A stretch of 64,000 bases of DNA from Takakia lepidozioides (lineage: Eukaryota > Plantae > Bryophyta). The translations under genes and the position numbers were made by a program. Positions 7,649-33,043 of the stretch are shown piece after piece. A model generated the notes under the pieces. It saw only the letters and a program-made list of their open reading frames with translations. It ran no database searches and was not told the origin of the DNA. The stretch spans positions 80,042,001-80,106,000 of the forward strand of contig CM060731.1 in NCBI GenBank assembly GCA_030704615.1. The letters run 5' to 3'. Position 1 is the stretch's first letter. Every line of letters starts with the position of its first letter.

Positions 7649-8074
7649 TGTTTTTATTTTATTTTCTTATAGTGATGGTGAAATTGGCAAGCCAAGCCAT
7701 AGCCAGGCTCTAGGGGTACCTCTTGAGTCTAAACTAATACTTTCATCCACTCGGATGGTTTTCTCGTTGTAAAGTATCTCGGGTTCACCCTCACCAAAAG
7801 GGGTGTATGCCTTATGGCCCCACAGAGGTTTATTTTTCCCCAGAAATAAAAAAAATGGAAAATATAGTTATTTTGAAAAGAAATTTATTGGATCTCAATT
7901 TCGTTTCAAGATTTTTATTGGAAATGACGTCGTGTGTGTGTGTGTATGTGAGAAATGATTCATTAATTATAAAAAGATTGTAAAATGCAAAGTGTCATGT
8001 CAAATTGCTATGGTATAAAGTGGCACTTCGTCTATGGGTTGGTAAAACCCCGTCGTTACCTTTCTCACCTACTA

Positions 8075-10305: not shown

Positions 10306-11362
10306 CTGCAAAGTTTCAAATCAATTTAAAATCATTTGGTAGGGGGACGATTGGTTCACCCTTTAAACCATTTTAGATTGATGTCATACTTCTCAAAGAC
10401 GTGTAAGAGGGCATGTAGAAGACACTTGCAAAGTTTCGGAGCAATAAAATATCATTTCATAGGGGAAGTTTCCGTTCACCCTTTCATCCAATTTTGAATT
10501 GAACTGCATTTTTATTAAATAAAATGATTTAGAGGGCATAGGATTGTGGGGCGCAATGATTTTGTTTTTGGCTTGATTTTGATCTGTGAGTTGAACCCTC
10601 ACACCACCACATCCTTGCCAAAAAATGTACCAAAGAAAAATGTTTGGAAAAAAACGTTCATCATTTGCTTTATGCTCACTATTGCAGAACTCTCTATGAA
10701 GAGTGCATGAAGTTGAAGATAACTTCACCTTGGAGTGTAAATGAGGGAATAAAATGTGTTTTGGATGCAGACGATGTCTGTTCATGGTGATATTTTGCAT
10801 GCAACTCTTCATGTTGTTATCAAGCATATGGCTTCAGAATGGAATTAAAAACAATTCATGTGCAGGCGAAAGGTTGTTTCTCCTTATGAAGTTGAATAGC
10901 CGATTCAAACAACTTTGTTGAAGTTCAACTTTGGTCCATATGTGCTTAAGTACGTACAAATCACGTACACAAAGTTGCAAGCGAAGAAATAATCATTTGC
11001 CCCCCGAAGTTCGAACGACTCGTTAAACCTTTCAACCAATTTTCAATCATGAATCATTTAATAGGGAAACTATTGGTTCATCCTTAGAACCATTTTAGAC
11101 TTGTCCGGTAACTTAAAGAGGGCATGTACAACACACTCCCAAAGTTTCAAATCAATCTAAAATCATTTGGCAGGGGAACGATTGGTTCACCCATTGACCC
11201 GGTGTACACTGTCACTCTTCAAGATTCGTGGGTGTGGTGCTTGATTATCCCATATGATGGACCCAGGTGCCATGGCCAAGTAACAAACCATTAAAACATT
11301 ATGGTACGAGACAAACACAATTGAAAACAACATTTATTCGAACATGATGTACAGTCAGAGGT

Positions 11363-12870
11363 CTACAAGTTTCTATCCATCCTCCAGCAATTTTTGGGCT
11401 CAGGCCAATTGAATAGCCCCGTCATGAAACGCTTCATAATATTTTCTAGTTTGTACTGCAACTCTATTGTGTCTACACACAAGTTTTCCAGAGCGGAAGC
11501 AAAACAGGTTCTAGTAGACATATCGTTGAACAGACTTGCATCGAACGTGTTCCCCCATTTATTGCCTGGGCTATCTTTCCAATTGCAAAGGTCTCTGATG
11601 GCACGGTTAGAGGAGGCCTACGAGGTGTGCCATCTGACTGGTTGTTGGCTACATTATGAACAATTGCAATTTCAGGTGCAATCCACCATCTATGTGCGAG
11701 AGTCTTTATCATCTTGTCTTTGCTCTCAAAAATATACACTGTGGTTTTTGGGTCATCCGTCGTGGAGGCCATCCCCCAATCGCATACCCCAATGTACACA
11801 TCTTCAGACCATTGTGGAAAATGCAACAAGATGTTGTCGGGAGACATGTCGTTGTGCAAGAGGTGGTGATTATGGACGTTGAGCATGATGTGCAAAAGCG
11901 TCCATGCTAATTGGGTGCAATTCTGTCGGAATCGAACCAGTTGGTTGACCTCCTGTATTTCCTGCTCCGTCCCCCGTCGTTCCATTAACTCCCTGTTATC
12001 CCGATCATTCCCCCATTTCCTGTCAATATTCAACCATGATCGTATGGTCCCCCCATTCCACCAATGTGTGTAACCTTCATTTCAACGTGGATGCAACGCA
12101 AAATACTTTATGATGCCGAAATGATGGAACTTTACAGCCAACGCCTCATTGTTATGTTGGACTTTGGCAAGCTCAGCATTTGTTTCCCTGGGCGTTTTCC
12201 CTGCTAGCTCCCAAGATGGAGGAATGAATTGATCCCCAACAATTCTAACCCTCTGAATTGTACCATACCCTCCATGTTTGGGCGCGTCGAGTTGTTGTAC
12301 CTGTGTGTTTGTGGATATGTATCTCACGTTCAATGCCGCATCCGCGGACGAGGACCCTGCTTTCCATGGGAGTGGTTTTGTACGTCGTTTGGCGTGGGCC
12401 TTTGCCATGTCAGACCACAAATCCATAAGCACAAACAACTCCTCCTCCGAAGTTGGCATGCGACCTTCAGCTACAGGTGTTCTCGTAACAAACTTGTCCA
12501 TGGTTTGCCTCAGATTCCATGTGGCATCATGGGCCCGGTCCTCCATCCATTTCGTGAACTGGAACTTCGTCATGTCCTCCTCCCATTCATCCCCGACCAA
12601 AGCCTCCCTCATTCTGATCTCCATATTGTGCTGGAATCTAAGGAACCCCTCATTCCCATGTCGGACATACAAAAGATTCAAACGCATTATGTCATTGTCC
12701 TTCAAATAATCCAGCACTACTTGCTTCACCACCTTCGCGGCCTCTGCGCTTAGATAGTTTTTTTTGTTGACCTGACTATCCCGTTCATGTGCATGTTTAC
12801 GCTTCCTACCTTTACGCCTACTTCCCGAGGAACCCCCTGACACTGCGTTCGAAGCAACGTTTCCGGACAT
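11363..12870 (-). pseudogene. Intronless protein kinase (TE cargo), disrupted by one in-frame stop and a 3' frameshift
   Basis: ORFs 12082-13080 and 11473-12033 are in the same frame across a single TGA. Motifs: G-loop HGGYGTI, AGK lysine, NEAL, catalytic HNDMSPDNILL, DWG, WIAPE. Likely start ATG at 12870 (MSGNVAS...RRKGRKRKH, NLS-like). The C-terminus after the frameshift ends ...CWRMDRNL* at 11363. Confidence 0.85.
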
Positions 12871-13156
12871 GATGAAAGTACTTTGCGGAATAGACGTGGC
12901 TTCGTAACGGAAAACTAAACCCAAACTATTGATAACCTTATATACTAGCAGACCAATTTCCTCACCCTCTATTGGTATAGTACCCAAAGCAAACTCTCCC
13001 GCAGTCCCAGGAAAAAAAGGCAAAAACTCCTCCCCCACACAAATCCACTTTCTCCCCCCGCTACGCTCAGTCCTGGCCACCGAAGTTCAAACTCCAAGAA
13101 GCCCCAGAACCGCACTCACAGAGAGGGAAAAAAATGGGTTGGGAATGAAGGGTAGA

Positions 13157-13166
13157 CCCTTATATA
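13157..13166 (-). promoter_or_regulatory. TATA box of kinase gene
   Basis: TATATAAGGG on the minus strand, between the palindrome array and the ORF; equivalent boxes precede the other two genes. Confidence 0.55.
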
Positions 13167-13262
13167 CTGCCTGGAGAGGCCTGACGTGCGACCGTCTCTG
13201 CTGCCCATTCACGCCTCGCCACGTATCCAGGGAGCGGTCGCATCTAATAACAAAAAAGAAAA

Positions 13263-13700
13263 TGTGCGACCCCCCATAAGCGGTCACACCTAAAAACAAA
13301 AAACAAAAAGTCTGCGACCACCATCGGCTGGTGGTCGCACCCATTTAAAAAATAATTAAAAATGTGCGACCATCCCCTGCTGGTGGTCGCACCCATTTAA
13401 AAAATAATTAAAAATGTGCGACCATCCTCTGCTGGTGGTCGCACCTATTTAAAAAAAATGAAAAAATTGCGACCACCACCTGCTGGTGGTCGCACCCAAT
13501 TTAAAAAATAGAAAAAATGTGCGACCACCCTCTGTTTGTGGTCGCACCTATTAAAAAAAATGAAAATGCTGCGACCACCACCTGCTAGTGGTCGCACCCA
13601 TTTAAAAAATAAGAAAAAATATGCGACCACCCCCTTCTGGTGGTCGCACCTATTTTAAAAAAATAAAAATTTGTCCGACCAACCTTTGCTGACGGTCGCA
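13263..13700. repeat. Palindrome array 1: 9 units of TGCGACCACC-N7-GGTGGTCGCA with A-tract spacers, period ~51-52 bp
   Basis: Units start near 13265, 13313, 13365, 13417, 13468, 13520, 13570, 13622 and 13674. Confidence 0.95.
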
Positions 13701-13932
13701 TGATTGACAATATAAATCATAATACATGAATTTTACAGATAATTAATGAAGTCCACGTAATGAGGCCACATCGGTTGCCACGTCGGTTCTCATAGTAAAT
13801 AGTCAATAGTAAAGTAAAAAAATAAACATATTTATGTACAGTAACGTTGGTTTAGGACGTGACGTGATGCACGTCCGTCGTTGACGTCGGACGTGACGCT
13901 GACGCGTCAACGCCACATCATTTGCAGCTAGG

Positions 13933-13968
13933 CGTGAAGGGGAGCTTACCGAAGTGAGGTGCGCGACA
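13933..13968 (+). mobile_element. 36-bp terminal stub of the chromovirus LTR whose remainder starts at 26528
   Basis: CGTGAAGGGGAGCTTACCGAAGTGAGGTGCGCGACA matches the LTR 3' terminus seen at 36540-36574. It shares the TTCACG variant with the 26528 copy; the other copies read TTCAAG. Confidence 0.92.
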
Positions 13969-14400
13969 TAATCAATAGCCACTCCTATGTAGCTATTGCC
14001 CTTGGTCGTAGTTTTGAGAGGTCCGACAAGGTCTAAGCCAACCCTTGTAAACATCTCTGTTACAGGGATTGGTTGAAGTTTAAGAAGAGCCACGGTTCTA
14101 GGCAGCAGGGGTTTTGGACTTGCATGGAACACACTTAGCAATAAAATCCTGAACATCCTTGGTTAGGCCTTTCCAGTGGTACTTTTCTTGAAGCCGCTTC
14201 ACAGTTTTCTCAACTCCAAAATGGCCAGCATAAAGAGAACAATGATACAGTTCAAGCAATGAAGGGACATAGCTCCTTGTAGGGATCTCCACGACACTCT
14301 CCTGCCCTTGAAGACAAACCACCTTGAGCAACTTACCTTCATACTCCCGGTGGGTAGGGAGATGATAGTTGACTTGCCTTTTAGTGTAAGAGGAGAGGCC
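13969..14400 (-). pseudogene. Ty3/Gypsy-type integrase fragment (HHCC zinc finger plus start of core), interrupted by the LTR
   Basis: YHCSLYAGHFGVEKTVKRLQEKYHWKGLTKDVQDFIAKCVPCK, then FTRVGLDLVGPLKTTTKGNSYIGVAIDY, cut off at the LTR terminus. Confidence 0.85.
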
Positions 14401-15364
14401 CTTAGATGTGTGCCTGTGCTACACCTCTGGAGAAGGGCTTGATGAAGGTGATTGTCCATGGCTGCTGATGTAGCAAGTGCGACAGTTTTCTCCTGCCACA
14501 TCTGCCAAGTCCGCATCGTTTGTGGGAGCTGGTGAAGGGTGGTAGCTCTAGAGGGACGTGCAGGCCGCAATTTTGATTCCTAGTCCTTGATACAGTAGCC
14601 ACTAATGAAGCGATGCTTGTGTAGCATGTAAACACCCTCGCCCAAGAAGTGTCAGAGCTCCTCGTCCACCTTGAGCCAAAAGCCCACTCGGATAACGGAG
14701 CGGATGAGCTTCTCATTGGCCAGCAGAGTGTGCACCTGATAGTCAATAACGGAAAATCCAGGCAAGTAGTATCTTATATGCTCTTGTCTAAAAACAGCTG
14801 CAGGAAAGATCAAGACGTCATTGACGGTGTGAGGGAAACGGGAGACAGGGATTCCCGCAACATGATCATCCCAAGTTATGTCCACATTGTGTTCTGGCCG
14901 CCAGGGGCCGTTGCACAATTGTCGGAGTTAACTTGACTCAGGTTCGCGTAGTTAGCTATGCAGAGGCTTGAGATGCCCTTCCTACGATTCTGACTCATCC
15001 AAGCATTTACACATCCATCACACCGTGCACAGAGAGCACGCTTTTCCAATGAACATCAGCCGTCTTAAGCACCGTGCTGATCCCTTTTATAAACGAGGGT
15101 TCATGATCTTATCCAACAGAATGTCCAGTCTTGATTGGCTGCTTGGATTTCAGCCAGGTGCCCATCCAACGGGGATGCCACCTCTTCTAGCTTAGAGATA
15201 AAGTAGCTGTTAGCATAAGGCACTTCCTGTTTATAAATAGAACTGCCAGTGGGGTTCATCCATACTTTCCCCAATGGCCATCATCCACCCTTTCATCGTT
15301 CACTCATTCAGATGTTGAGAAAGCAGGTGGAGGGAATCTGGCCATTACATAGTGTTGTAAGGTA

Positions 15365-15781
15365 TCAATATATGAAGCGAGACGTTTGTTTTGTTTTGTT
15401 TTGTTGGCTCTGTCCCTTCAGGGCAGAGACTTTGCATCATGTTGAAGTCAATGGAAATGTGGTCAATGGACCTTACACCGTTGGTTTAAAAAAACTTTTA
15501 AGTACAACACATGGCAGCTTGTCAAAATTGTTGCTTCAATGGACAGAGCCTCTCGCGGTTTGCGGCTTGTTTTGTTTTGTTTTGTTTTGTTTGTAGCGTC
15601 GTTGGGATCTCCCAAGCCACGGGGCCCTAGCCCCGGTGCTTGGTGCCCTTGGAAAGCCTTCGATGAGGAGGGGTGCACCGGCTTGGTCTCATGATTTTGG
15701 GCCCCGCGGTGTGGGAGATATGGAATTTCAAGTATTTTGGCCGATCGATGAAATTCGGGAAAAATAGCAAAGTGGCCTTTC
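15365..15781 (+). mobile_element. Helitron-like 5' fragment, same family as 7051-7648
   Basis: A|TCAATATATGAAG start, (GTTTT)n tracts, and GGGATCTCCCAAGCC...GTGTGGGAGATATGGAATTTCAAGTATTTT, which is a diverged reverse complement of 7450-7648. No 3' CTAG end. Confidence 0.55.
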
Positions 15782-18145
15782 ATCAATTGATTTTACATTG
15801 CTTTGAAGCTTTGCAAGTGGAGTGTCTCGATCAGCACATGCCCTCCTACAAGTACCGGAGAAGGATGACGTGAATAAAAAAATGGTTGAAAGGGGGTGAA
15901 CCAATCATTCCGCTATCAAATGATTTTATATTGCTTTGGATGTCATTGCTTTGGTAATCTAAGCCCCCCAATGGCCCCTTGTAGCCCTTGAATTACAATT
16001 CAAAATGCAATTCAAGCCCTTAAAATTGGTACTGCCAGTCCCTAAAATGACCAACCCCGGCCGCCCCTCAATTGTAATTTGAGCCCTGAAATTGTCAATT
16101 CAAACCCCTCAAATTGCACTTCTAGCCCCTGAAATGACTATTCCCGCCCCTCAAATTGCAACTGTAGCCTGTGAAATGGCAATTGCTAGTGCAGCCCCTG
16201 AAATGGCAATTGAAGCCCCTAGAATGGCAGTTTCAGCCCATCATATGCAAGTCCAGCCCCTCAAATTGGTAATTCGAACCCCATAAATGGCAATTTCAGC
16301 CCCTGAAATTGGCTATGGGTGAACCAATTATTCCCTGCCCAATGATTTTGATTCATTTGAAACTTTGCGAGTGTCTTGTACATGCCCTCTTAAAGTTATT
16401 GGACAAGTATGAAGTCAATGTTAAATGGTTCAAAGGGTAAACCAACAGTTCCCCTGTTGGATGATTCATGATTAATCATTAATGATTGATCTCATATTAC
16501 ACTAGGACCTATCAGAGGGTACATTGAACACACTGGCCAAGTCTCAAAGCGAACGAAAATCATTTGGATGGGGCAACCATCCGTCGGCCCATTGATATTT
16601 TCGGATTTCGGTGATCTCATATTACGTCTGGGACCTCTTCCATGGCACATTGACATACTGGCCAGTCTCTCAAGCGAACCAACATCATCTGGCGATGGCA
16701 ACCATCCGTTGAGCCATTGAATGAATTTTGCTTGATCTGATATTAGTCCGGACCTGTGAGAGGGGTCTCGAACTCGAGTACAGGCGTGTGCAAACGTACT
16801 GCTTGGAAGCAAACAAAAATGATTTGGAGAGCAACCATCCGTTCACCCGTTGAATGTATTTTCGCTGGATCTGCTATTGCTTTGGGGCCTGTTGGACTGT
16901 GTTTCGCGTGCTCACGATTTTTTTTTCGTTCGGTTTTGAATGGGGCGTGTAATGGTTGTAATGTAGCCATATGCAACGTGTGCGTGCCAAAATTGGGAAC
17001 GAACATAATTCATTGGACCCAAAACCACAGTCTTCTCCCTGTTTTGCACTCCAAAATTGATTGTGTTCAACTTCATGCCTTCTTCATGAGAGAGTTCTGC
17101 AAATAGTGAGTGCAGAGAACACTTTTTTTTTTGGGGCATTTTTTATTGGTCCAATTTTGGCGGGGGAGTAGTGGTGGGATGGCTTGAAGCCGCCCCAGAA
17201 CAAAATTGAGCCAAAAACAAAATCGATACGTGCCAGAAACCCCAATGAAAGGCAGTGCAAACCTATTTATTGCTTTAAATTAATTTAAATTCAATTACAT
17301 TATGGAATGGCTTGGTGTCGATGGGGAGTTTATTCGTCTGTTGTGTCTCCGCAATGTGTCGCACACACGTTCAAGCACATGCGGGCAAAAGAGGGGCTTC
17401 AACCACATCCGTTCAATGGGTGCAATCCGTGCACGCATATCAGGATTTTTTTTTCGCAATGAACAAAAACCAGATGACAACTGAACGCCTCATTGGCCCA
17501 TTGAATGAATTTTGATTGATCTCATATTACACTGGGACCTATCAGAGGGTACATTGAACACACTGGCCAAGTCTCAAAGCGAACGAAAATCATTTGGATG
17601 GGCAAACCATCCGTCGGCCCATTGAACGAAGTTCGATTGATCTCATATTACTCTGGGGCCTCTTCCATGGTACATTGAAGATACTGGCCAAGTCTCAAAG
17701 CGAACCAAAATCATTGGAGGCAAATGATTTATGCGTCTGTTCATTTATTTGTGATTAATCGTTTAATGGGAAAAGGATAAACCAAAGGTTCATTGATAAA
17801 AAAAAATTGACTGATTTGAAATTTTGTGCGTATGTACTACATGCCTCTTACATGGACCGGAGAAGTATGAGATCAATAAAAAAATGGTTCACAGGAGGAA
17901 TCAATGGTTACTTGATGTGCCAATTTCTGAATGCTTTCAAACTTTGCCATTGCCTTGTACATGCCATCTAAGGTACCAGACAAGTATGAGTTCGATTTAA
18001 AATATTGCAATGGGTGAAACCAATGGTATCTTCATTTAGCAATTTTTGATTGTTTTGAAACTTTGCCAGTATATTGTACATGCCGTCAAACAGGTACCGA
18101 ACAAGTATGAGGTCATTCAAAAATGGTTCAAAGGATGAACTCGTA
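15781..18145. repeat. Composite internal minisatellite region
   Basis: ~120-bp units (GAAACTTTGC...GTACATGCC...AAATGGTT...GGTGAACCAAT) at 15790-15940, 16310-16470 and 17810-18145. ~122-bp units (GATCTCATATTAC...CTGGCCAAGTCTCAAAGCGAAC...CCATCCG) at 16487-16870 and 17517-17720. ~21-bp GCCCCTGAAATGGCAATT units at 15960-16310. 17010-17290 is a diverged inverted copy of 10510-10800. Confidence 0.8.
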
Positions 18146-18246
18146 TTTCCAAAAATTACGTAGACTATACAGTGGGTTGCACATTAATTTCGCAACCTGA
18201 GACCTTGGCCTACTCCCTACGTTTCTAGTCTTTCTAGTCATCTTCA

Positions 18247-20890
18247 TCTAGATTTTTACTTCGTTGTCGTCATCTCCAGATGTTGATGAAGATGCTCCGG
18301 GTGTAGAGGCGTGCCTCCATTAGTACGGATAGCTCGAACCTGGGCTCGAGTGGTCAAAGAGGGACCCAGTGTTGTGTGGTCCACCCTTGCCATCATGCGT
18401 AGCGTTCTAGGCGAGTGCTGACTAATCCGTCACATTTCCAGAGCCGGGTTGTGTCGCTCTTGCTACGGCGATAGACAATTTTTCAATTAAATCCGATATG
18501 TTTGGAAGTTGCAAAGAACACCCCTGGAATAAGGCAACTTGGTCACGCCATGTGTTCTGCAATATTTTTCCACACTCGTGATGACAGCCTTGAAATTGTC
18601 CAACACCTCCTCCTGCTGGGTGTCTCTGCGCAACTATCTGGAAGAAATGGCCCATCATCCCGACGAGGCATCCAGTACGTCTCATTCATATTCTCCCAAC
18701 GGATGATAGAGGCCTCCAACTCCCGCAGAAATAGGTCTCTCCCAATCGGTTCGCGATTGATGGGTCGTTTTTCCGCCGGCACCCACGGATCCTCAGGCAG
18801 TCGGAAGAATCTTTGTCTGGTTACAGCTCCAATGCCCTCCCAAGTTCCGGAAAAAAAGCTCCATTTGGACTAGGGTCTCGTATGCCTCTAGCACGCACAG
18901 TTATTTCATAGTTGGATGTCACCAAATAAGGTCACTAGATTTTCAACACTAGTTAAGTCTTCGCATCCAAGGGTGCATCTCTTTGGAGCATCCCATGTCA
19001 TGTCTCCCCCCAGTGCTGCCAATTTAAAAAATCGTAAGCGATACATCCAATGGCATGTTTGTACCAGTTGTACTCGTATCCCGTGGGCATATTGTCTTGC
19101 AACCCAACAACTCGTAGAAACGTCGATGGATGGTCCACGACAGTCAGGGCATTGGCTGGCCTCGCATGGCTACCGATATGAGACATGGGGGATGGAACAA
19201 ATGGCCACATGAACCAAGCATATAGCCTCCCTCCAGTCCATAAGGGTTGAGGTACATTGTGCATACCGTACCATCTGTTACCCATGATGCTGGATTGCTC
19301 TGTGGTATCCACATCAGTTTATCCTTATTATGTAGGCGACATCCTCGGCCTGTTGTCCACTCCTATATACTTCCAAATCCCAGTTTATGCTGTTATTGGT
19401 ATCGGAAATTGTATGCACACAGTGGCTCAACATGACATATGCACAGCACCCCATGTGAATGAATCCAGTGTACTTCGACGTAATACATCACAGCAACAGT
19501 GTCGTGCCTTTGCAAATTAGCATAGATGCTATCTACGCTTCGATTCGACAAACGTGCTGCACGTTGGAGGGAGGACAACGTTTCTTCTATCCGTGTTTTC
19601 TGCGATGCTAGATGGCCCGCCCATGTCACCCAATTCTGCCAATTCCACTTCAAACCATGGTCACGATCGGATTTGCATGGCACTTGTAACCGATATGCAA
19701 CAGCCCTACGCTGCTCGCGTTCCCCCACAAGCTGCGTCTAATTCAGGGTCTTCTTTTTTATTGGGCCGATGTACTGCTTAATTTGCACGGCTGAACATTA
19801 CTCCAGTTTCCACTTCTGGTCCGGTCCTCCCCTTTCTTGCCCTCTCCAGCTACAAGCTCTTTCTTCCTCAACCCTCGCCGCGGTCCGATGCTTTCAGACG
19901 ATCTTAACATTCAGATTCATTCCATGCAACCGATTGATGTAGATCACCTCGGAGTCGAATGACGCGGTCCAATGTCCATTTTGGTGGCCGATATTCAAAC
20001 GCGCCATATGTCTTGCTCGTTGGGTGATTGTGCCTCGGGTCCTGAAGCCAACACCACGGCGTCCCGCTGTTCGAGAGTCCCCAACCTATATTCCTTCCAA
20101 CACAATTTGCCTAGTTGCCACCGTTGCAATATGAATAATGTCCTGATGTCATTGATGTGCTATTCATGTGCCGGCCAACTGTTCTCAACGGAGGCATAAC
20201 ACTCACCCCCCTCCACCTCAGCGTTGAAGGTCCGGCGCGAACCAGACTGTTGCGGCGTATAATCTGGAGTGGTCTGCATTCTCACTTTACTCCACATCAG
20301 TCGCTTTCCCATCCGAGCGATTTATAATTTCGGCCCTTTCTCCTTCTTCCACCTCGTCGTTTCCATCGAACCGTATGATATGATGGCTGCCCCCTGACGT
20401 ATATACAAGTTTGGATATCAGAGAACATGTATAGTCTAGTACGTTGTCTCGCAGGCTCAGAGACAAGTTTGTCAATCCAATGGTGGCAATTAAAATCAAC
20501 TCTGTGTACAACATGGCCGCAAATAAAACGGGACATTGTTGTTGACGAGCGGTTTGACCCCACATGGTGTATGGATTACCTCCTCTGCCTGTGCGGAAAT
20601 GCGGGGTTGGCGCATGAATGCAAGCTAGATTGATTTTGTGGTTTGTGGATCATGCCTATCTCTGGGTCACAAAACGATTTATGTGACACCATTCCACAAA
20701 TTTCCTACAGTCACCAAAAGACCACCGCTTGCCCAAATTCCAACTTCCCAACCTGGTTACGCAAGAATGTTGGGGTCATTGTATATTCCCAACGAAGTTC
20801 GCGCCTGACACCTTTGGGTTTTTTTTTTGGAGGTCCAGGTTCATTATCGTTATCCTGGGATGATCTCCTCTGTCTTTCCTCCTCCGCCAT
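18247..20890 (-). pseudogene. Degraded RING-H2 finger (putative E3 ligase) gene, TE cargo
   Basis: 19263-19135 translates CTMY(TGC>TAC)LNPYGLEGGYMLGSCGHLFHPPCLISVAMR-frameshift-QCPDCR. N-terminus MAEEERQRR...PPKKKPK (ATG 20890, NLS-like). Coiled-coil-like stretch SQKTRIEETLSSLQRAAR; acidic end SSTSGDDDNEVKI*. Many stops and frameshifts; this domain is not in the ORF track. Confidence 0.7.
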
Positions 20891-21249
20891 TTATGGCTTG
20901 GCTTACCCCTACTCGACAGGGGTTTGCTAAGAAAAATGTTCTCCCAACCTTCCAACTGTACCTAATCCTACTCCCTGATGAATCCTCCCCAAGTACTAGA
21001 GGCACGTGTCACTCCCTCGGCGTTCTAAGTGATATGCCGCAATGTGCAATGAAAAAAACGTGTGGGTGCTAGAGGAGGGCTTCCCGGGAGGGTACTCAGC
21101 ATCGATTTCGTAGAATCCAAACGGCCCAGAATACCCCCACCCAACCAATAGCACCCCTCCCAATTGGACTCAATGACAAGGAATGCAACCATCCCATCGC
21201 CCACCAGTCCTGGTGTGGAGAAAAGTGAGGGAAAGAATGGCCTCCAAGG

Positions 21250-21258
21250 CCTTATAAA
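21250..21258 (-). promoter_or_regulatory. TATA-like box of RING gene
   Basis: TTTATAAGG on the minus strand, ~60 bp from array 2, in the same position as for the kinase and transposase genes. Confidence 0.45.
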
Positions 21259-21317
21259 GCCCCCCTTCTACACTCAGGGGCGTGCCTTGTCATCCTGACT
21301 GCGCAATGCTATTAATA

Positions 21318-21755
21318 GCTGCGACCGCCAGCAGGGGTGGGTCGCATTATTTTTTCTTTTTTTATTATGTGCGACCACCAGCAGGGGGTGGTCGCAAAAA
21401 AAATATTTTTTAATAGGTGCGACACTAGCAGGGGGGTGGTCGCAGATTTGTTTATGTTTTTAATGGGTGCGACCACCAGGGGGGTGTCGCATTTTTTTTT
21501 ATTTTTTTAATGGGTGCGACCACCAGAAGGGGTGGTCGCAGATTTTTTTGTTTTTTAATGGGTGCGACTACAGCAAGGGGGGTGGTCGCAATTTTTTTTT
21601 TTTTTTTATAGGCGCGACCACCAGCAGAGGGGTAGTCGCAGAATTTTGTTTAAAACAATAGGTGCGACCACCACATCCTGGTGTCGCACTATTTTCCCTT
21701 TTCTTTAATAGATTGCGACCACCAGCAGGGGGGTGTGTAGGGGGGTGGTCGCATA
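21318..21755. repeat. Palindrome array 2: ~9 units, opposite polarity (CAGCAGGG loop, T-tract spacers), period ~49-50 bp, with outliers to ~22090
   Basis: Units near 21320, 21370, 21418, 21468, 21515, 21563, 21612, 21663 and 21714. Confidence 0.95.
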
Positions 21756-22458
21756 ATATTTCCGATTTTTTAATATCTACCAACAGTCCGTAGGATCAGT
21801 TGGTTAAGTGCACTGAGTGCGACCGGACGATTCTGGGGTCAAATGGCTATTTGATAGGTGTGGTATGGTGCCCCATTCCTACGCGTCTTGGGTATAAATG
21901 AAAGAGGTTTAGTCGCTTCCCTAAAACTAAATGGGGCCTGATTGGTGAGCTGTCGCTCCCAGGTGTTTCCCAAAATAAAATAAAATAAAATATGAGACCA
22001 CCAACAGGGGTAATCAGTAACTAGGTGCAAATACCAGCAGGGGGGTGGTCGCAACATTTTTTTATTTTTTTTGTAACAGTTGCGACGACCGATAAGGTTG
22101 TCAACAATTTTTTTTAACATCGGGCCAACCACTTGGAGGTTGGTCCCCTGGCACCTGTAGTATGTTTGGAGAGGCAGATGAAAAAAGCATAGATGACTCC
22201 CCATGGATTTGTGAAGGGGAAGATGAATGTTGGGAGCTGCACCTGGCTTTTGTGGCTTTCGAAACCATAATAGGAAATCAACAATGTAAAGGTAATGACG
22301 AAACACAAACACACGCACAACCACCAAACCCTTTCTTGGGTACACATATTCCACCATTTTTATTTCCGTACACGTATGCATGTACCCAAACTGAAACATG
22401 GATATCCATGGAAACATACTACATATCATGTGACAGGTTACAGAAGTTATAGCTGTAC

Positions 22459-25426
22459 CTAATTCCGTCTGGCACGACGACGATGGTATGATCTCACGTC
22501 TAGTACAAAATCTTCGTCCCTACTCACTTCTCCCCCGTTCCCATGATCAGTGCTAGAATCATGATCTCCATCTGTTCTTTCGTTTCCAGAGGCAACTGGC
22601 CGTTGGACCTGTAGTCGTCCTCAGAGTACGTTCAGTTGTCTCTCTGGTCGATTTCCACTCCTATCATGAATACCATCTAGGGTATCAGGCATGTTCACAG
22701 GTCGGTCACCAACAAAAGGTTGCACAATTCTCTGTCGTTTCTGGGCTTGTCCCGGATTTCGTGGTGGCATTGGAGCAGATCTCGTATGAGGAAAGCTACT
22801 CGCGCGTACATCAGAGGGGCCGACATGAGAAGAAGGGGCATGGGATGGACCAGCGAGGGTCGAGGGAGCACGGTTCACATGCGGACGTCGTCAGGCCAGA
22901 TGAAACGACAATGGCCGGTCGTCGTCATCCGATGGTTCGACTTGCAGAAGTCCCGCAGCAGAAGAACCATTTCCCAGGATCGGAGTAGCGATGGAAAGAA
23001 TTACATGAGGGGGAGAGAGACTAGATGGACCAGCATGGGATGGACCGGCTTGAGAAAGAGAAACATGAGATGGAGCGGGGTGAGATGAAGCACAGTTTAC
23101 AGGGGCACGATGTCGGTGAAGGAATGACAACGGCTGGTTGTCATCATCCGACGATTCGACCTGCACATCTCCCGCAGTCCGTGGAACTCGTGGTGGGGGA
23201 GAATTGACCTCAACTTCATTGTTGAGAGTGTGCTCCACTGGGGGAATGGGGTCTGCAATTGGGATGACACCATGTCACAGTTCATCAACAACAAGGTCAT
23301 CGAATGATGGATGCATTGCAACATCATCGTCATTAAATTCATATGGGTCATGTGGAGGATTGCCCACATCATCGGACCCATCCCAACCGTCGGAGACGGA
23401 GTCCCTCGCGGCGTCAATGTTATCATTGCTGCTAGATTGGACTTCTGAGGCAGATTCTTCAGACAACAGATTCTTCTCGTACCATGCAGATGCGTCACTT
23501 GCTCTCCTCTATCGCAGTAGCCTATAATTCGTGTAGACGTAAACCAATTTGTCAGCCCTGGCAGGATTCAACCTGTTGCGAATCTTGTTGTGAACAAACG
23601 AGTAACTGCTCCAGTTCTGCTCACAGGACGAGGCAGAGCACACTTGAGCAAGAATACGCTTTGCAATGGGAGCTAACGTTCTTCCTCCAGCTCCAATCAG
23701 ATCCCACCATTCATGTTGCAACATATTCATTGCTTTTGGATCCGGCATGTAATGGAAATGATTTTGCCGATCCGAGAAGCACTGGTACTCGGACAACGCT
23801 CGCTCTGCAATGTTCAAGGGCGTAAGTTACATGATGACCCGTACAATCCCGGCTTTGGCATCCACATCGTCTCTCAAATCCGTATTGTCCAGCAAGAATG
23901 GATTCAGCAAGGCCCCCGCATAATGCAAGTCCGTGCGAACCATCCGTTTGCGGTCGTAAAATGCATCCTCGGTCCTTGCCACCAAATCATTGTTCATAGA
24001 CAATGGAGGACGCCTCAAGGATTGCACGTGCTTCTCAAGGTTTTCCAATATCAACCATGTTTTACCCATTATTGGTTGTTTTCCATCAAACTCCCGCAAA
24101 GCAATCAATACCGGCTCCACTATGTACACAAAATTTGTACATTTCGCCCATAAATCGTCGGAGCGAATGATTGCGCGGACCCTCCGATTTTTTCTCAAAG
24201 ACTTGGACTTACGAGAGTCGTGTAAGGTGCCCACATACGCATCCCATTGAGGGTCAATGATCACCTGCTCCAGACCCGCCCTAACAGTCACTAGTCGATC
24301 CACCATCAAAAAGTGTGGCAAAGCGGGTTTCACCCAGGTTCCTAAGGCTGTATTTGGGTTCATGCTTTCTAAACAATGGCAGAGGGATGTGATGTGTACG
24401 AATAAACGTCACAACCGACTTTGCCCTTTTTACTAGTTGTTTCATCCATGATTCTTTTCCCCAATCCTCCAAAAGGAGATCAAAAATATGAGCAGCATAC
24501 CCTTGGTAATATAGATGGGGATATCGTACAATCAAAATATCGGCCATATTAACCATGTTAGATGCATTGTCCGTGCACACTTGGACAATTTTATCAGCTC
24601 CAATTTTATCGATGTAACTCGTCAACAACCCTGCTTGATAACGTGCATCTTTTTTCTCCCCGCTTGTGTGAACGGATCCCAAAAATTATTCCCCCGCAGG
24701 ACAGACCAACATGACATTGAACAGTGGTCGATTAGTAACAGAACTCCAACCGTCCGCACATATAGTGCTTCCATATTTCCGGAGAGAATCACTTGTCTTT
24801 TCATTCACCTTTTGGGTGAGGTCAGACATAGCCTCTTCTAGCAATCCTGTGCGGAGATCGCGATAACTCGGAGGTGTGTATGTGGACTTGGAATCGGACG
24901 TGGCTTTGACAACAGCCACAAACGGAGGAAGCCTCGAGATATTGAACGGAATATTGGCCTCGTAGAAAAATTGGGCCCACTTCTTATCCAGAGTCCTCAT
25001 GTGCTACAAATTTAAGCCTTCTTGCATTGATTGTTGCCTCAATGGTCTGGTCTATACAAGTACTGGCGTACAATCAGGTGTTGCTCCTGACCCACCGGCT
25101 TCTCCACGAACAGTAGACGCCTCACAAGAATCCCCCTGGGTACAACTCTGAGGGACAGTTTGATTCAAACCAGGAGTGTTTGGCTCAGAAGCCGCGGCCA
25201 CATCAAGAGACGGTGGGATATTGCCTCCACATTGGGCAAAGCGGGCTTTCATTCGCATGGAGGCTTTTGGGCACAAACTAACCCCTGCATTCTTCCCATC
25301 TCTGTAGCCGAGGTGATATAACATGCGATTTTTGAGACCCGCCAGCTTCAATGCACAAAGATTGCATTGAACACCATCCTTTTTGTGCGGGTCTATGGTG
25401 AACCAAGGGATCCACTCCTCCCTCAT
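22459..25426 (-). pseudogene. hAT-superfamily transposase (BED finger, DUF659-type DDE core, hAT dimerisation domain, long acidic/Ser-Pro tail), frameshifted
   Basis: VQCNLC...YHL...SLC (BED); FFYEANIPFN; TICADGWS; QVCTDNASNM; YAAHIFDLLLED (CxxH site reads YAAH); TRFAT; LHYAGALLNP; WWDLIG...RILAQVCSASSCEQNWSSYSFVHNKIRNRL. Confidence 0.93.
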
Positions 25427-25736
25427 CCTCACACCCAAAACCCTAACCACAGACTTAAGGTTGAACGAAGAACACTAGTGTACTTGGTAGATTTGTCAAG
25501 AGCAATAAAAGTTAGAACAGAATGCGATGGCCCAACACTACGGCATCAATCCAAGTGGATCAATGCACCATGTAGTATTGTGCTTTTCGACAATTTGTTG
25601 CAGTGGCTCTGGTGGAAGCCACAACAGCAAAAAGTCCGCACCCTCCTCTTGGGCTTACACTCTTGCTGAAGGAATAGAGAACATCCACTCGCCACAAAAG
25701 TGTTTGCCACAAAAGAAGTGAGGGGGATTGGGACCA

Positions 25737-25745
25737 CCTTATATA
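25737..25745 (-). promoter_or_regulatory. TATA box of transposase gene
   Basis: TATATAAGG on the minus strand, ~50 bp from array 3. Confidence 0.55.
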
Positions 25746-25792
25746 CCCTCCAGCCTCCAAGCCTCACACGCTCGACGAATCACATCCAATGC

Positions 25793-26302
25793 TGCGACCG
25801 CTCCAGGTCGCACGAGGAAGTCGCACGTTAATATTTTTTTTAAACTGCTGCGACCACCCCCATGCTGGTGGTCGCACCTATTAAAAAAAAGAAAAATGTT
25901 GCGACCACCCCCATACTCATGGTCACAGAGATTATTTAATAAATAAATAAATAAAATATAAAAAAAACTGCGACCACCCCCCTGCTGGTGGTCGCACCTA
26001 TTAAAAAAACAAAAAAATACTTCGACCACCCCCATGCTGGTGGTCGCAGATATTAAAAAATAGAAAAATGTTGTGACCACCCTCCTGATGGTGGTCGCAC
26101 CTATTACAAATAAAATAAAAATTGTGCGACCACCAGTAGCGGTGGTCGCAACTGTTTAAGAAAAGAAAAAAATGCGACCACCCCTGCTAGTGGTCACATC
26201 TATTTTTAAAAAACAAAAAATGCTGCGACAACCCCTTTGCTGGTGGTCGCAACTATTAAAAAATAAGATAAATTCTGCGACCACCACCATTTGGAGGTCG
26301 CA
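25793..26302. repeat. Palindrome array 3: ~10 units, period mostly ~51-52 bp
   Basis: Units near 25793, 25849, 25900, 25969, 26022, 26073, 26125, 26173, 26224 and 26275. Confidence 0.95.
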
Positions 26303-29300
26303 CCAATTTAACAATAATGATTTAAAAATGACCTCAACTATTGGCGGTGTAGTAATTTATAAAACAATTCATTCACTTGCCAAGGTGTCGCTTGGAATAC
26401 AACGTGTCCACCTACGTGGCATATTTTTCACCTAACTCATGTTTTACTAATTTTCCGGCAAAACTGACGTGACGTTGGTCGCATCAGCATCAGGTCCGAC
26501 GTGACGTGACGTGTGCAACCCTGTAGGCTTCACGTCATAGTTACTCACTTTGATGCGCGCGCCTAACTCCCAAACTGGCCGCCGGGCCAACTCGGAGCTT
26601 CGGCTGCTCACTGGGACATAAACGGTCCTTCTTTGCTCTTCCACAAGACCCTCGCTCACTTTGGGCCTAGTGGAGATTCCCTTTGGTTGTTGGCAGTCCG
26701 GAACAGCTCCCCACATCTTGGTCACTTTCCGGCTCGCACACATACTCACTAGTTTTTGGTCACCAACAGGCTTGCACCGTTCTTGGGGTTACTACTCCCT
26801 ATATAAACTTCTGTGACTGTCCGCGGGGGTTTCACAAACAACACCGTCCTTTAATGGCGAACCACCACGAAGACCCTTGACTCCCGGTGATGAGTCGCGG
26901 TGAGTCTTGGCCCACCCACCACGGCCCCAATGGACCGTGATAAGTCCCAAGACTTCCCACGACTCCCACCACAAGGTCTCCGCCCCATGGTGAGTCCTAT
27001 GCCACCCCCACTAAGACCCACTAAGCTACCACCACCCCTCGTGGAACCACCCCCACCGCAACCCGGTGTGCGGGGCTCCACCTAGTGAGCGCCTCCGCCT
27101 CCTTGAGTGCCTTGGGCACTCAAGGATGCTTCAGCCCCCGTACCTATTGTTGCCATTGCCCCCACCACAGCGGCAGCCCCTCTTGTGTCCCGACCCCCTG
27201 CCCTCAAGGCAAAGGGCCGCGACACACACCCCTACCAACAGGGAGTCGATGTCCTCATCGACTTGTCCAATTTGTAGAAACTAACATCGAAGTTGTGGCG
27301 TCCCACATCAAGGAGTCTGTTTCCGTACCATGGCGTCCCATGACAAAGAACCAAATCTCCACTTGACTCTACTCTCCACTAGCTAGTTCAGCCGACTTTC
27401 TCCAAGTCCCGCCCAAGGTTGGAGCCTCTCCAGCTCCACCCAGTGCACTCTTCTTGGCCCACTTCAAGGCCAAGGAACGATCCTCCCCGAGGATCGAATC
27501 GCCTTACTGTAACAACATTGCTTGCGATCGCTCATGATTCCGCTTTTTGGCATCACTTTGAGCAAGGGATCACCTTGAACCGTTTTTGGCATCAACCGTG
27601 TGCCCCCAATCACTACAATTGGGTCTGCCTTGGACTAATGCTGGCATGAGGTACGGGAACACGCCGAAGCCGCACTACGACTTCGTCCCGAGGTTACACG
27701 ATTATAGTACGTGAACGGAAGCACGTAGCTTCCGCGTTAGCCCGCACTACAAGACAACCTCCTCGGTAGCGCAGATATAGTATGCGCACGCGCCAGGTGC
27801 ACATTAGCACGTGAACTCCCAAAGAAGGCGCAAGTTTTCTTGCCCCTTAGATGGGAGTCACCCAATTTCAGCACTGCGCAAACACACGATTAATCCAATT
27901 TACCTCTCCCACTTTTGTAAGCTAGCATGCATTCTACACACTAGCCAACCATACCATGCATCACCATTCCAAACAAAATAGGACACACAACATTTGGAAA
28001 CCATTTCATTTATAAACAAAATTTGTACAACACAAGTTTTTGCAGTCGAATTCCTGAGCTAGCTAAGCCGGACTAAGCATGCATCTCCTCCCCCACGATC
28101 CAAGGTTGATGTCCCCATCAACGCTTCTTCCGCTTCTGAGGTCGCCCTTCGAAAGCTGCAACCGCCTCGGATGCGTTTCCCATTTCTGAGGCATGCACCC
28201 AAGTTGCCTCCACTTGATGATAGCCCTTCCATTTCACGAGAAACTCGTTTCTTGATTCTTGAACCTCCTCGACTTAAGCACTGCCTCCACCTCTTACTCA
28301 GGTTCATTTTCATGATCCAACAGCACAGGTGGCGGATGCAACACTTGATGCTGATTCAGAGGCACTTCATCTTTGAAGTTAGGATTCAAAAAAGAAACGT
28401 GGAATACCGGATGCACCTTGCTCTTTGCCGGCAGCTCCAATTCATACACATCATCATTCATAACCTCCGGATGCGAAAGGGCCCTGCATACGGAGATACG
28501 AACTTTGGACTCACTTTCGGAGGTAGTCGAAAATTCTTGATGTTCAACTAGACATCCGTGCCTGCCTCAAACTTAACTTCCCTCCGTTTTCGATTCGCCT
28601 GCCATTCATACCGTTTCCTAGCTTTGGCAATGTTGTACTTTGCGAGCTCCAACAAATGCTCACGTTCTTCCAGCACCGCTGCTGCTGCCGGTTCCTCAAC
28701 GTATTGGGCGGCCCAACTTGTCGGCACCAGAGGTGCTTTTCTATAGACCAATACGAAAGGGGAAACTCCTGTTGCGGAGTGTTTTGTGTTATTTTAACAG
28801 AACTCTGCCGCATCCCAGTGCTCCACCTAGTCTGATTGGTCTGCCGACCCATAATTCCGCAAAATCTGCTTCACCACGGAATTCACTCTTTCCGTTTGGC
28901 CGTCCGTTGTAGGTCGGAAGGCCATGCTCATCTTGAGCCTCGTCCCCATTTTCTTCCAAAGTGCTTTCCAAAATTTACTTGTAAACTTTGGATCGCGGTC
29001 CGAGACAATATCCTTCGGGAGTCCATGATGCTTGAAGACGATGGCGAAGTAAAGTCACCCCGTCTCCTGCGTCGTTGTCATCTCCTTGGTGGGAATGAAA
29101 TGGCCCATTTTACTGAACCTATCCACCACCACCATGATTGCATCGAATCCTTCTGACAGCGGCATAACAGTCATGAAATCCATCGAGACACTTTCCCAAG
29201 ACCCCTCTGGAATCGACAAAGGTCGTAACAGCCCCGCTTGCTTTTTGTACTTGCTCCGGTTTTGTTGGTATGTGGTGCATGTCTTGACATACTCCTCGGC

Positions 29301-30997
29301 CTCCTCCCTCAGTTTGGGCCAGAAATACTTTTTCTTCAAGAGTGCCGCGGTGCACTTGGCTCCGCCGTTGTCGCGCACCTCACTTCGGTAAGCTCCCCTT
29401 CAAGTCATAGTTACTCGCTTTGATGCGCGCGCCTGACTCCCAACCTGGCCGCTCGGGCCAACTTGGAGCTTCGGCTGCTCACCGGGACATAACGGTCCCC
29501 CCTTTGCTTCCCACTAAACCCTCCACCTAATTGGGACTAGGAGAATTCCCTTTGGTAGATGGCAGTCCGGAACAGCTCCCCACTCTTTGGTCGCTTTCCG
29601 GCTCGCTCGCTTACTCACTAGTTTTTGGTCACCAACGGGCTTGCACCGTTCTCGGGGTTACTACTCCCTATAAATACTTCTATAGCTGTCCGCGGGGGTT
29701 TCACAACCAGCCATGCCATTTTATGGCGAACCACCACGAAGACCCTCGATTCCCGGTGGTGAGTCGCGGTGAGTCTTGGCCCACTCACCGCGGCCCCAAT
29801 GGACCGTGATGAGTCCCAAGACTCCCCACGACTCCCACCTCGAGGTCTCCACCCCATGGTGAGTCCTATGCCACCCCCACTAAGTCCCGCTAAGCTACCA
29901 CCACCCTTGTGGAGCCACCCCCACCGCAACCCGGTGTGCGGGGCTCCACCTAGTGAGCGCCTCCGCCTCCTTGAGTGCCTTGGGCACTCAAGGGTGCTTC
30001 AGCCCTCGTACCTATCGCTGCTACTGCCCCCACCACAGGGCAGCCCCTCTTGTGTCCCGACCTCCCTGCCCTCAAGGCAAAGGGCCGCGACACACACCCC
30101 TACCAACAGGGAGTCGATGTCCTCATTGACTTGTCCATTTTGTAGAAACGAACATCCAAGTTGTGGCGTCCCACATCAAGGAGTTTGTTTCCGTACCATG
30201 GCGTCCCATGGCAAAGAACCAAACCCCACACTTGACTCTATTCTCCACTAGCTAGTTTGGCCGACTTCCTCCAAGTCCCGGCCAAGGGTGGAGCCTCTCC
30301 AGCTCCTCCCAGTGCACTCTTCTTGGCCTACTTCAAGGCCAAGGAACGATCCTCCCCGAGGATCGAATCGCCTTACTGCAAAAACATTGCTTGCGACCGC
30401 CCATGATGCCGCTTTTGGCATCACCTTGAGCAAGGGTTCCCTGGAACCCTCTTTGACTAGGAAGATAACCTTGAATCAACCGTGCGCCCCAATCACTACA
30501 ATTGGGTCCGCCTTGGAATGCTGGCCTGAGGTACGGGAACACGCCGAAGCCGCACTACGACTTCGTCCCGAGGCTACACGAATATAGTACGTGAACGGAA
30601 GCACGTAGCTTCCACGTTAGCCCGCACTACAAGGCAACCCCCTCGGTAGCGCAGTTATAGTACGCGCACGCGCCAGGTGCGCACTAGCACGTGAACTCCC
30701 AAAGAAGGCACAAGTTTCCTTGCCCCTTGGATGGGGGTCACCCGATTTTGGCACTACGCAAACACACGATTAATCCAATTTACCTCTCCCATTTTTATAA
30801 GCTAGCATGCATTCTACACACTAGCCAACCATTCCATGCATCACCATTCCAAACAAAATAGTAAGCACAACATTTGGAATCCATTTCATTTATAGCACGT
30901 TTTGTACAATACAAGTTTTTTGCAATCGGATTCCTAAGCTAGCTAAGCCGGGCTAAGCATGCATTTCCTCCCCCATGCTCCAAGGTTGATGTCCCCA

Positions 30998-32075
30998 TCA
31001 ACGCTTCTTCCGCTTTTGAGGTCGCCCTTCGAAAGCTGCAACCGCCTCGGATGCGTTTCCCATTTCTGAGGCACGCACCCAAGATGCCTCCACATGATGA
31101 TAGCCCTTCCATTTGACGAGATACTCCGTTTCTCGGTTCTTGAACCTCCTCGACTTAAGTATTGCCTCCACCTCGTACTCAGGTTCATTTTCATGATCCA
31201 ATAGCATAGGTGGCGGACGCAACACTTGATGCCGATTCGGACGCGCTTCATCTTTGAAGTAAGGTTTCAAAAGGGAGACATGGAATACGGGGTGCACCTT
31301 GCTGTTTGCCGGCAGCTCCAATTCATACACATCCTCATTCATAACCTTCCGAATGCGAAAGGGTCCTGCATACGGAGGTACGAACTTTGGACTCACTTCC
31401 GAAGGTAGTCGGAAATTCTTGATGTTCAACCAGACCTCTGTGCCTGCCTCAAACTTCACTTCCCTCCGCTTCCGATTTGCCTGCCTTTCATACCGTTTCC
31501 TAGCTTTGGCAATGTTGTACTTTGCGAGCTTCAACAAACGCTCGCGTTCTTCCAATACTGCCGCTACTGCCGGTTCCTCAACGTCCTGGGCGGCCCAACT
31601 TGTCGGCACCAGAGGTGCTTTTCCATAGACCAATACTAAAGGGGAAACTCCCGTTGCGGAGTGTTCTGTGTTATTATAACAGAACTCTGCCGCGTCTAAG
31701 TGTTCCATCCAGTCTGATTGGTCTGCCGACACGTAATTCCGCAAGAATTGCTTCACTACGGAATTCACTCTTTCCGTTTGGCCGTCCGTCGTAGGTCGGA
31801 AGGCGGTGCTCATCTTCAGCCTCGTCCCCATCTTCTTCCAAAGTGCTCTCCAGAATTTACTCGTAAACTTTGGATCGCGGTCCGAGACAATATCCTTCGG
31901 GACTCCATGATGCTTTAAGACGTGGGCGAAGTAAAGTCGCCCTGTCTCCTGCGCCGTTGCCGTCTCCTTGGTGGGGATGAAATGGCCCATTTTACTGAAC
32001 CTATCTACCACCACCATGATTGCATCGAATCCTTTTGACAGTGGCATAGCAGTCATGAAATCCATCGAGACGCTT
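30998..32075 (-). CDS. Integrase core plus chromodomain of copy B (no N-terminal zinc finger)
   Basis: SVSMDF...VVVDRFSK...IVSDRDPKF...DGQTERVN...GPF...HPVFHVSLLKPY...EYEVEAILKSRR...YLVKWKGY...ASW. Confidence 0.93.
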
Positions 32076-32990: not shown

Positions 32991-33031
32991 GATGAGGCCA
33001 ATCCCAAGGACGATCGCGTACTGAACTCTAA

Positions 33032-33043
33032 GCTCTGATACCA
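33032..33043 (-). other. Primer-binding site complementary to initiator tRNA-Met
   Basis: TGGTATCAGAGC, 2 nt inside the LTR end ...CGCGACA. Confidence 0.9.

Follow-up and report, generated by a model that had tools for sequence, protein, structure and literature searches.

A 64,000-nucleotide stretch of the genome of the bryophyte Takakia lepidozioides (GenBank assembly GCA_030704615.1, contig CM060731.1, positions 80,042,001 to 80,106,000 of the forward strand), hereafter called the window, was analyzed for a large DNA transposon that appeared to carry more than a transposase gene. Positions 10307-26527 very probably represent one old insertion of an autonomous-type hAT transposon of about 15 kb, a member of the DUF659 clade, whose genes encoded a protein kinase, a RING-H2 protein, and the transposase. 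The copy is dead, and all three genes are broken. Its two arms, 10307-13934 and approximately 15780-26527, add up to about 14.4 kb. An inversion of approximately 10307-15780 has turned the kinase arm together with 35 bp of a long terminal repeat (LTR) and about 1.8 kb of host flank. An initial annotation, made from the letters of the sequence, had described a pseudogenised hAT element with arms of at least about 14 kb in total, split by an inversion and with one target-site duplication shared by its two termini. The flanks, the direction of the termini, the summed arms, and the lesions in all three genes bore out this description. The coordinates of the features are collected in Table 1.

We examined the flanks of the two termini, with three further copies of the LTR in the window as the reference. 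The sequences to the right of 13934 and to the right of 26527 align to the same LTR point, one in forward and the other in reverse orientation. Both flanks read CGTGAAG where the other LTR copies read CTTGAAG, which is a private T>G variant. The insertion site lies 35 bp inside the LTR, and the target-site duplication is either 7 bp long and perfect or 8 bp long with one mismatch. Because the flanks meet at a common LTR point and share CGTGAAG with its private variant, 13934 and 26527 mark the two ends of a single insertion. The transposase-side end of the window copy, CCTA plus CAGGGTTGCA with GACGTGACG repeats, is of the same type as the ends of L012, an intact relative described below. The hAT terminal-repeat pattern (C/T)A(G/A)NG was found in CAGGGTTGCA at 26527 and in CAGGGTTACCA and CAGGGTTGTCA of L012. 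The kinase-side terminus of the window copy is degenerate (CCTAGCTGCA). The ends had originally been read as CCTA...TAGG; CCTA is present, but the real inverted repeat is CAGGGTTGCA, as in the relatives, and CCTA precedes it.

Both termini point rightwards, and the segment from 10307 to about 15780 has therefore been inverted. At the left breakpoint, a 184-nt contig from run X9 matches 10307-10438 with one difference (99%) and leaves the window sequence exactly at 10307, which fits a real junction. The right breakpoint falls within degenerate 120-bp units and was placed no finer than approximately 15360-15790. A degenerate repeat related to these units forms an inverted pair, 7447-7649 versus 15364-15775, which may have mediated the inversion. 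Since this pair lies outside the arms of the element, the 120-bp unit family is not confined to it.

The transposase gene was recognized by two domains. DUF659 scored 71.6 and 36.3 bits in the window, above the Pfam cut-off, and the hAT dimerisation domain Dimer_Tnp_hAT (PF05699) at 23512-23826 (-) scored 28 bits against a cut-off of 21.4, in agreement with the earlier assignment to hAT. PF05699 was also found in L012, L013, L014, L017, and L018, at 31-39 bits or on record without a mark of weakness, and L015 had a match that was marked weak. The relatives keep the DDE and CxxH motifs of the hAT catalytic core, and DGW, TDNAS, C.AH, and SSCERNWS are invariant in six of them. Sequence searches with the transposase gave no match to a solved structure.

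Whether the kinase and RING genes belong to the element was judged from its relatives. L012 is a 17,136-bp metagenome contig holding P0006, a kinase of 494 amino acids (aa). Its element measures 15.76 kb, has CAGGGTT inverted ends and GGACGTCC subterminal repeats, and contains intact kinase, RING-H2, and transposase genes together with a fourth gene for a 343-aa protein (u343). The left end, CAGGGTTACCA, was delimited by three contigs that are common from position 445 onward and have three different preceding sequences, and the right end, ...TGACAACCCTG, lies at 16203. The element occupies at least three insertion sites with copies 98.7-99.8% alike; between such nearly identical copies the ratio of nonsynonymous to synonymous substitutions (dN/dS) is unusable. 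In four further lineages (L014, L015, L017, and L018), whose RING proteins are 35-62% identical, the RING gene adjoins a convergent DUF659/hAT transposase gene, and L013 has kinase and transposase genes in convergent orientation with no RING gene between them. The divergence of RING and transposase goes together (62/64%, 40/49%, and 40/49%), in a comparison of 3-5 lineages only. The u343 protein is a paralogue of the N-terminal domain of the RING protein alone (30-38% identity), and the gene has a motif array to itself, at 5900-6225; the window yielded no counterpart of u343.

Because these relatives are independent, intact, and multi-copy, we read the kinase and RING genes as integral to the element. 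The comparison supports the view that both are old, conserved components of a hAT lineage, as judged from sequence, and not host genes caught between two elements. The initial annotation had likewise taken them for integral genes rather than chance captures. That proposal was strengthened by the presence of all three genes inside the ends of the L012 element, by the RING gene next to the transposase gene in five diverged lineages and the kinase gene in one more, and by the conservation of catalytic motifs.

The kinase gene of the window keeps all catalytic motifs (GGYGT, AGK, HND..N, DWG, and APE), and a 186-aa piece of it matched Pkinase with 34 bits, above the cut-off. The family profile covers 11366-13086 in three pieces, of which two share a frame and are split by the TGA codon, and the last is shifted by the deletion. 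Other copies from the same species, present in contigs of three runs, have CGA at 12084 and an extra A after 11551; the window gene is therefore two mutations away at those sites. It differs by 1.8% from its nearest relative, and its N-terminal open reading frame (ORF) has one 96% relative, a short Logan contig. In a library of 1.84 billion proteins, the family comprised 48 representative clusters, P0006 among them, mostly of 500-550 aa. Its alignment keeps GGxGxV, AGK with an invariant Lys, an invariant alphaC Glu, HND, the catalytic Asn, DWG, and APE. The diagnostic residues of eukaryotic protein kinases (Gly-rich loop, VAIK Lys, alphaC Glu, HRD Asp, catalytic Asn, and DFG Asp) are thereby all represented, and several members scored 34-50 bits with Pkinase. 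The family is atypical because the Lys of the HRD loop is replaced (HNDLSP). The predicted structure of the L012 kinase, with a predicted local distance difference test (pLDDT) score of 83.6, consists of an N-terminal helical domain and a standard protein-kinase fold. Foldseek matched it with a probability of 1.0 to many kinases at 12-15% identity, none of them in particular.

The RING gene of the window is recognizable only through its relatives, whose RING profile gives colinear matches from 20890 down to about 18550; its Pfam matches are sub-threshold only, and half a finger is left. In the relatives, zf-RING_2 (35 bits) and zf-rbx1 (33 bits) both exceeded the cut-off, and all eight C3H2C3 ligands are invariant. 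The family also keeps a basic stretch near the N-terminus that resembles a nuclear localization signal, an N-domain of about 130 aa, a coiled coil, and, following the finger, a region of strong conservation. The AlphaFold model of the RING protein was poor (pLDDT 44.5), and a wide fold search with it returned only coiled-coil or helical matches with Z below 8. An Atlas search with the N-domain gave no usable match. Complex prediction for the kinase and the RING N-domain scored 0.00, which speaks neither for nor against binding.

We then located the elements of the upstream design that had been proposed for all three genes, namely a palindrome array, a TATA box, and the ORF, and found arrays, boxes, and start codons at each gene. 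The 27-bp palindrome unit reads TGCGACCACC-N7-GGTGGTCGCA, with a spacer of 6-8 bases and A/T-rich sequence between units, and recurs with a period of about 51 bp. There are three arrays of about 8-12 copies each, and within the window the palindrome occurs only at these three places. A variable-spacer search of the window returned 21 clean units (8 + 5 + 8) and degenerate ones, and a search with the fixed 27-mer at up to 3 mismatches gave 10 matches against 0.01 expected; all were inside the arrays. Arrays 1 and 3 have the same orientation, and array 2 the opposite one. The TATA boxes lie about 55 bp from the array on the gene side, the three proximal promoter regions can be aligned, and the distance from the TATA box to the ATG is 296 nt for the kinase gene, 368 nt for the RING gene, and 319 nt for the transposase gene. 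A second exact TATATAAGG is located at approximately 12937-12945, 74 nt before the kinase ATG. The insertion within array 2 combines an (AAAAT)n tail with a tRNA-like A-box and may be a short interspersed element, although ARAGORN detected no tRNA in it.

The same layout recurs in the relatives. In each lineage the genes are preceded, at 200-450 bp, by an array of a GC-rich, often palindromic motif of 20-27 bp that is particular to the lineage. L012 has GCGGTCGCC / CGACCGCC arrays before each gene, and its half-site CGACCGCC is one base apart from CGACCACC of the window. In L013 the array is followed by TATATAAGG, the same box as in the window; a plant telomere-type (TAAACCC)n tract lies at 3053-3085 of that contig, about 600 bp outside the kinase-side array. 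GGTCGC was considered as a universally conserved motif and rejected, as only the window and L012 have it and L013, L014, and L015 use other GC-rich motifs. Since array and TATA box recur across lineages with motifs that vary along with them, they behave as expected of binding sites for an element protein. From this layout we infer that the arrays may act as promoters and that the three genes may be co-regulated. Scans of metagenome contigs for the window palindrome gave no matches with the fixed spacer and, with a variable spacer, single chance matches in bacterial contigs; no copy of the same family was recovered by these scans.

Internal minisatellites had also been reported as common to both arms, and the 120-bp units are indeed present in each. 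A reading of these units as structured RNA found no support, since they fold no better than shuffled sequences (z from -2.9 to +0.2, mostly near 0). A 44-nt core at 10674-10717, with a twin inside 17019-17224, occurs in many unrelated contigs at high depth in all four runs compared, with differing flanks on both sides, and looks like part of a far more abundant short repeat. Both arms contain the repeat that includes this core, and its orientation relative to the 120-bp units is opposite. Between 9 and 28 kb, no Rfam or tRNA match exceeded the threshold.

Table 1. Features of the hAT element copy in the window and genes of its intact relative L012.
Sequence	Feature	Position	Strand	Remarks
Window	Arm A (kinase arm)	10307-13934	-	internal breakpoint 10307 to element terminus 13934
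Window	120-bp unit repeats downstream of kinase gene	10309-11211	.	piece of abundant short repeat at 10558-10764
Window	Protein-kinase pseudogene	11366-12870	-	in-frame TGA at 12082-12084; 1-nt deletion near 11551
Window	TATATAAGG box, kinase gene	13158-13166	-	TATA(T/A)AAGG type
Window	Palindrome array 1	13246-13700	+	8 clean and about 2 degenerate units, spacing 50-52 bp
Window	Subterminal GACGT-rich repeats and degenerate kinase-side terminus ...TGCAGCTAGG	13850-13934	.	compare L012 ends with GGACGTCC repeats
Window	First 35 bp of host LTR	13935-13969	-	starts with duplication copy CGTGAAG (13935-13941); moved by inversion
Window	Host flank inverted with arm A	13970-15780	.	right breakpoint between ~15360 and 15790
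Window	Arm B repeats	15782-18140	.	120-bp units in both orientations; 21-bp minisatellite (15943-16311)
Window	RING-H2 protein pseudogene	18546-20890	-	N-terminus with PKKKPKG at 20890; at least 8 frame changes
Window	RING-finger remnant (half finger, CGHLFHPPC)	19147-19362	-	within RING pseudogene
Window	TTTATAAGG box, RING gene	21250-21258	-	TATA(T/A)AAGG type
Window	Palindrome array 2	21312-22116	-	21312-21744, continuing at 21985-22116 after ~210-bp A-tailed insertion at ~21775-21984
Window	hAT transposase pseudogene (BED-like finger, DUF659, hAT dimerisation domain)	22600-25426	-	5 or more lesions; about 4 in-frame stops and 1 frameshift in conserved part
Window	TATATAAGG box, transposase gene	25737-25745	-	TATA(T/A)AAGG type
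Window	Palindrome array 3	25793-26302	+	8 clean and about 2 degenerate units
Window	Subterminal GACGTGACG repeats and transposase-side terminus ...GCAACCCTGTAGG	26460-26527	.	reverse complement CCTA + CAGGGTTGCA
Window	Second target-site duplication copy CTTCACG	26528-26534	.	reverse complement of CGTGAAG; followed by remaining LTR
L012	Kinase, 494 aa	1101-2585	+	intact
L012	343-aa gene (u343)	4701-5732	-	intact
L012	RING-H2 protein, 1039 aa	8281-11400	+	intact
L012	DUF659/hAT transposase (DUF659 and Dimer_Tnp_hAT), 966 aa	12608-15508	-	intact

Several observations sit uneasily with a single element that was inverted once and carried all of these genes as its own. The kinase-side terminus is without a CAGGG repeat, the duplication is perfect over 7 bp and not over the canonical 8, and L012 has no matching target-site duplication, its two flanks mismatching each other, perhaps as a result of an assembly that mixed copies. 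Decay is uneven, with 2 lesions in the kinase gene and at least 8 frame changes in the RING gene, and array 2 is flipped relative to its gene. All relatives are metagenome or Logan contigs. The comparison of the window kinase with its 96% relative gave a dN/dS of 1.1 from 20 differences, amounting to neutral decay at the tips. The contigs over the kinase ORF (11358-12284, 93-95% identity) are weak evidence of promoter activity at best, as the two runs that contain them are RNA only by guess and may be DNA; none of the contigs covers the arrays. If the two arms belonged to different elements, or if the inversion were an assembly artefact, termini that point the same way and a kinase arm far less decayed than the RING/transposase arm would be accounted for, and repeat-rich regions are prone to misassembly. 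We nevertheless consider this explanation highly improbable, as the outer flanks adjoin each other at a single position of one LTR copy and share a duplication that includes the private variant, and the relatives place the kinase end and the transposase end on one element. The orientation of the RING gene poses a further difficulty, since in the window it stands in tandem with the transposase gene, whereas the two are convergent in all five relatives that have both (L012, L014, L015, L017, and L018). Either the family in this genome has a flipped RING cassette, or the window copy underwent a second inversion. The order kinase -> <- RING <- transposase given in the initial annotation does result from undoing one inversion, but the convergent arrangement in the relatives makes it doubtful. 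Two adjacent inversions (10307-15780 and approximately 15780-22120) could instead have changed an ancestral order kinase -> RING -> <- transposase, as in L012, and the inverted position of array 2 relative to arrays 1 and 3 agrees with such a history. It is possible but somewhat doubtful, as it needs two events with a common breakpoint, leaves the proximal RING promoter intact including the spacing from array to TATA box, and has no visible breakpoint between 22116 and the 3' end of the transposase gene; a single inversion with a lineage-specific order fits as well.

The kinase and RING genes might also be passengers, that is, host genes captured by chance in the manner of Pack-type elements and without a role for the transposon. 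In plants, DNA transposons commonly capture genes, the window genes are broken, and comparison of the kinase with a close copy gives a dN/dS of about 1. Against this stand intact ORFs of about 500 and 1040-1120 aa that persist in lineages whose transposases are 43-64% identical, catalytic and metal-binding residues that are invariant, and the element's own motif array at each gene. Pack-type captures are host-gene fragments, typically containing introns or partial exons and having close host paralogues. The ORFs here are full length, intronless, and conserved over deep divergence, no host counterpart was found, and no relative came from an annotated host proteome, all matches being to metagenome or raw-assembly collections. 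We therefore give very little weight to chance capture. The arrays themselves may be viewed differently, as mainly transposase-binding subterminal repeats like those of Ac/Ds and not as promoters, with the internal RING array a duplicated end fragment. hAT transposases are known, as established for Ac, to bind subterminal repeats, the distance of arrays 1 and 3 to the termini is 230-620 bp with the same orientation to their own end, and L012 has arrays beside both ends. The position of arrays upstream of genes would then simply follow from terminal genes that read inward, an account that we find rather unlikely, like the subterminal view to which it belongs. A shorter GACGT-type repeat already fills the true subterminal 100 bp at both ends in the window and in L012, and genes in the interior also have arrays, with unchanged spacing to the TATA box (kinase in L013, u343 and RING in L012, and RING in the window). 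Promoter and subterminal roles are not exclusive, and the arrays could serve as both.

On the reading of one element with integral genes, we propose a family design in which the transposase gene reads inward from one end and the kinase gene from the other, with the large RING-H2 gene inside. In this design each gene is preceded by an array to itself, built from a GC-rich palindrome specific to the family, and by a TATA box, and the short GACGT repeats and CAGGGTT inverted ends lie outside the terminal arrays. The arrays would be the binding sites of an element-encoded, probably dimeric DNA-binding protein, for which the BED-like finger of the transposase is the obvious candidate. At the two ends they would serve as hAT subterminal sites, and before all genes as a common regulatory module. 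The putatively nuclear kinase and the RING E3-like protein might be trans-acting accessory factors that aid transposition or evade host control. As a tentative extension, the kinase and RING protein may form an element-encoded, virus-like modification system whose nuclear targets would be host factors of silencing or repair or else the transposase, with the arrays making all element genes one regulon under an element protein. If so, which is conceivable though not probable, this would be a cut-and-paste transposon of an undescribed kind, self-regulating and with several genes, probably belonging to bryophyte-type land plants. The roles suggested for the kinase and RING protein as a phospho-degron module, in anti-silencing, or as a toxin-antidote pair are speculation.

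The surroundings of the element contain other mobile sequences. The hAT insertion sits in the first LTR of a Ty3/chromovirus nest at 26528-37000, in which the LTR of about 2.7 kb is present in four copies (26528-29193, 29369-32075, 33046-33769, and 36574-35151) and integrase-chromodomain, gag, and RNase H ORFs lie at 31.0-34.4 kb. A Myb/SANT-like ORF (36565-37221) and a DDE_Tnp_4 transposase ORF of the PIF/Harbinger type (40953-41894) are found about 4 kb apart. Farther to the right, a 783-aa ORF at 61047-63398 (+) is without a Pfam match.

hAT elements are textbook single-gene cut-and-paste transposons. The present lineage resembles Ac of maize, Tam3, and Tag1 in its BED-like finger, its RNase-H-like core (here DUF659), the hAT dimerisation domain, CAGGG-type inverted ends, short subterminal repeats, and, less clearly, a target-site duplication of about 8 bp. 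Those elements, however, are 3.5-5 kb long and encode only a transposase, whereas this lineage measures about 15-16 kb and has two or three further conserved genes with arrays of their own. Accessory genes that serve the element are kept by other cut-and-paste transposons, namely VANDAL/Hiun with VANC (Mutator superfamily) and CACTA or PIF/Harbinger elements with a second ORF. The action of VANC depends on short motifs that recur within the family of elements encoding it. These belong to other superfamilies, and their accessory proteins are DNA-binding or anti-silencing factors, in contrast to the kinase and RING-type protein that are the putative accessory factors here. Large DNA viruses encode protein kinases and RING E3 ligases, such as US3/UL13 and ICP0 of herpesviruses. 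The likeness, a mobile genome with its own kinase and RING-type E3 for host proteins, would be a functional analogy only; capsid, polymerase, and packaging genes are absent here. In fungi, hAT-mediated amplification of a housekeeping gene is reported to have followed recent capture of a host gene (PMC6710886). That case is similar in that a hAT element multiplies a non-transposase gene, and differs in that the genes described here are old, family-wide, and have no known host counterparts. The literature searched contained no account of kinase or RING genes in a hAT element.

The window copy is of value as a clean case that combines a single target site with an internal inversion and a kinase gene close to intact. 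Intact natural copies would offer a tractable system for studying the use that a transposon makes of phosphorylation and ubiquitination, whether against its host or together with it. A deep hAT lineage that keeps a competent-looking kinase and a RING E3-like protein on arrays of its transposase's cis-motif would show that DNA transposons can evolve virus-like accessory gene sets.

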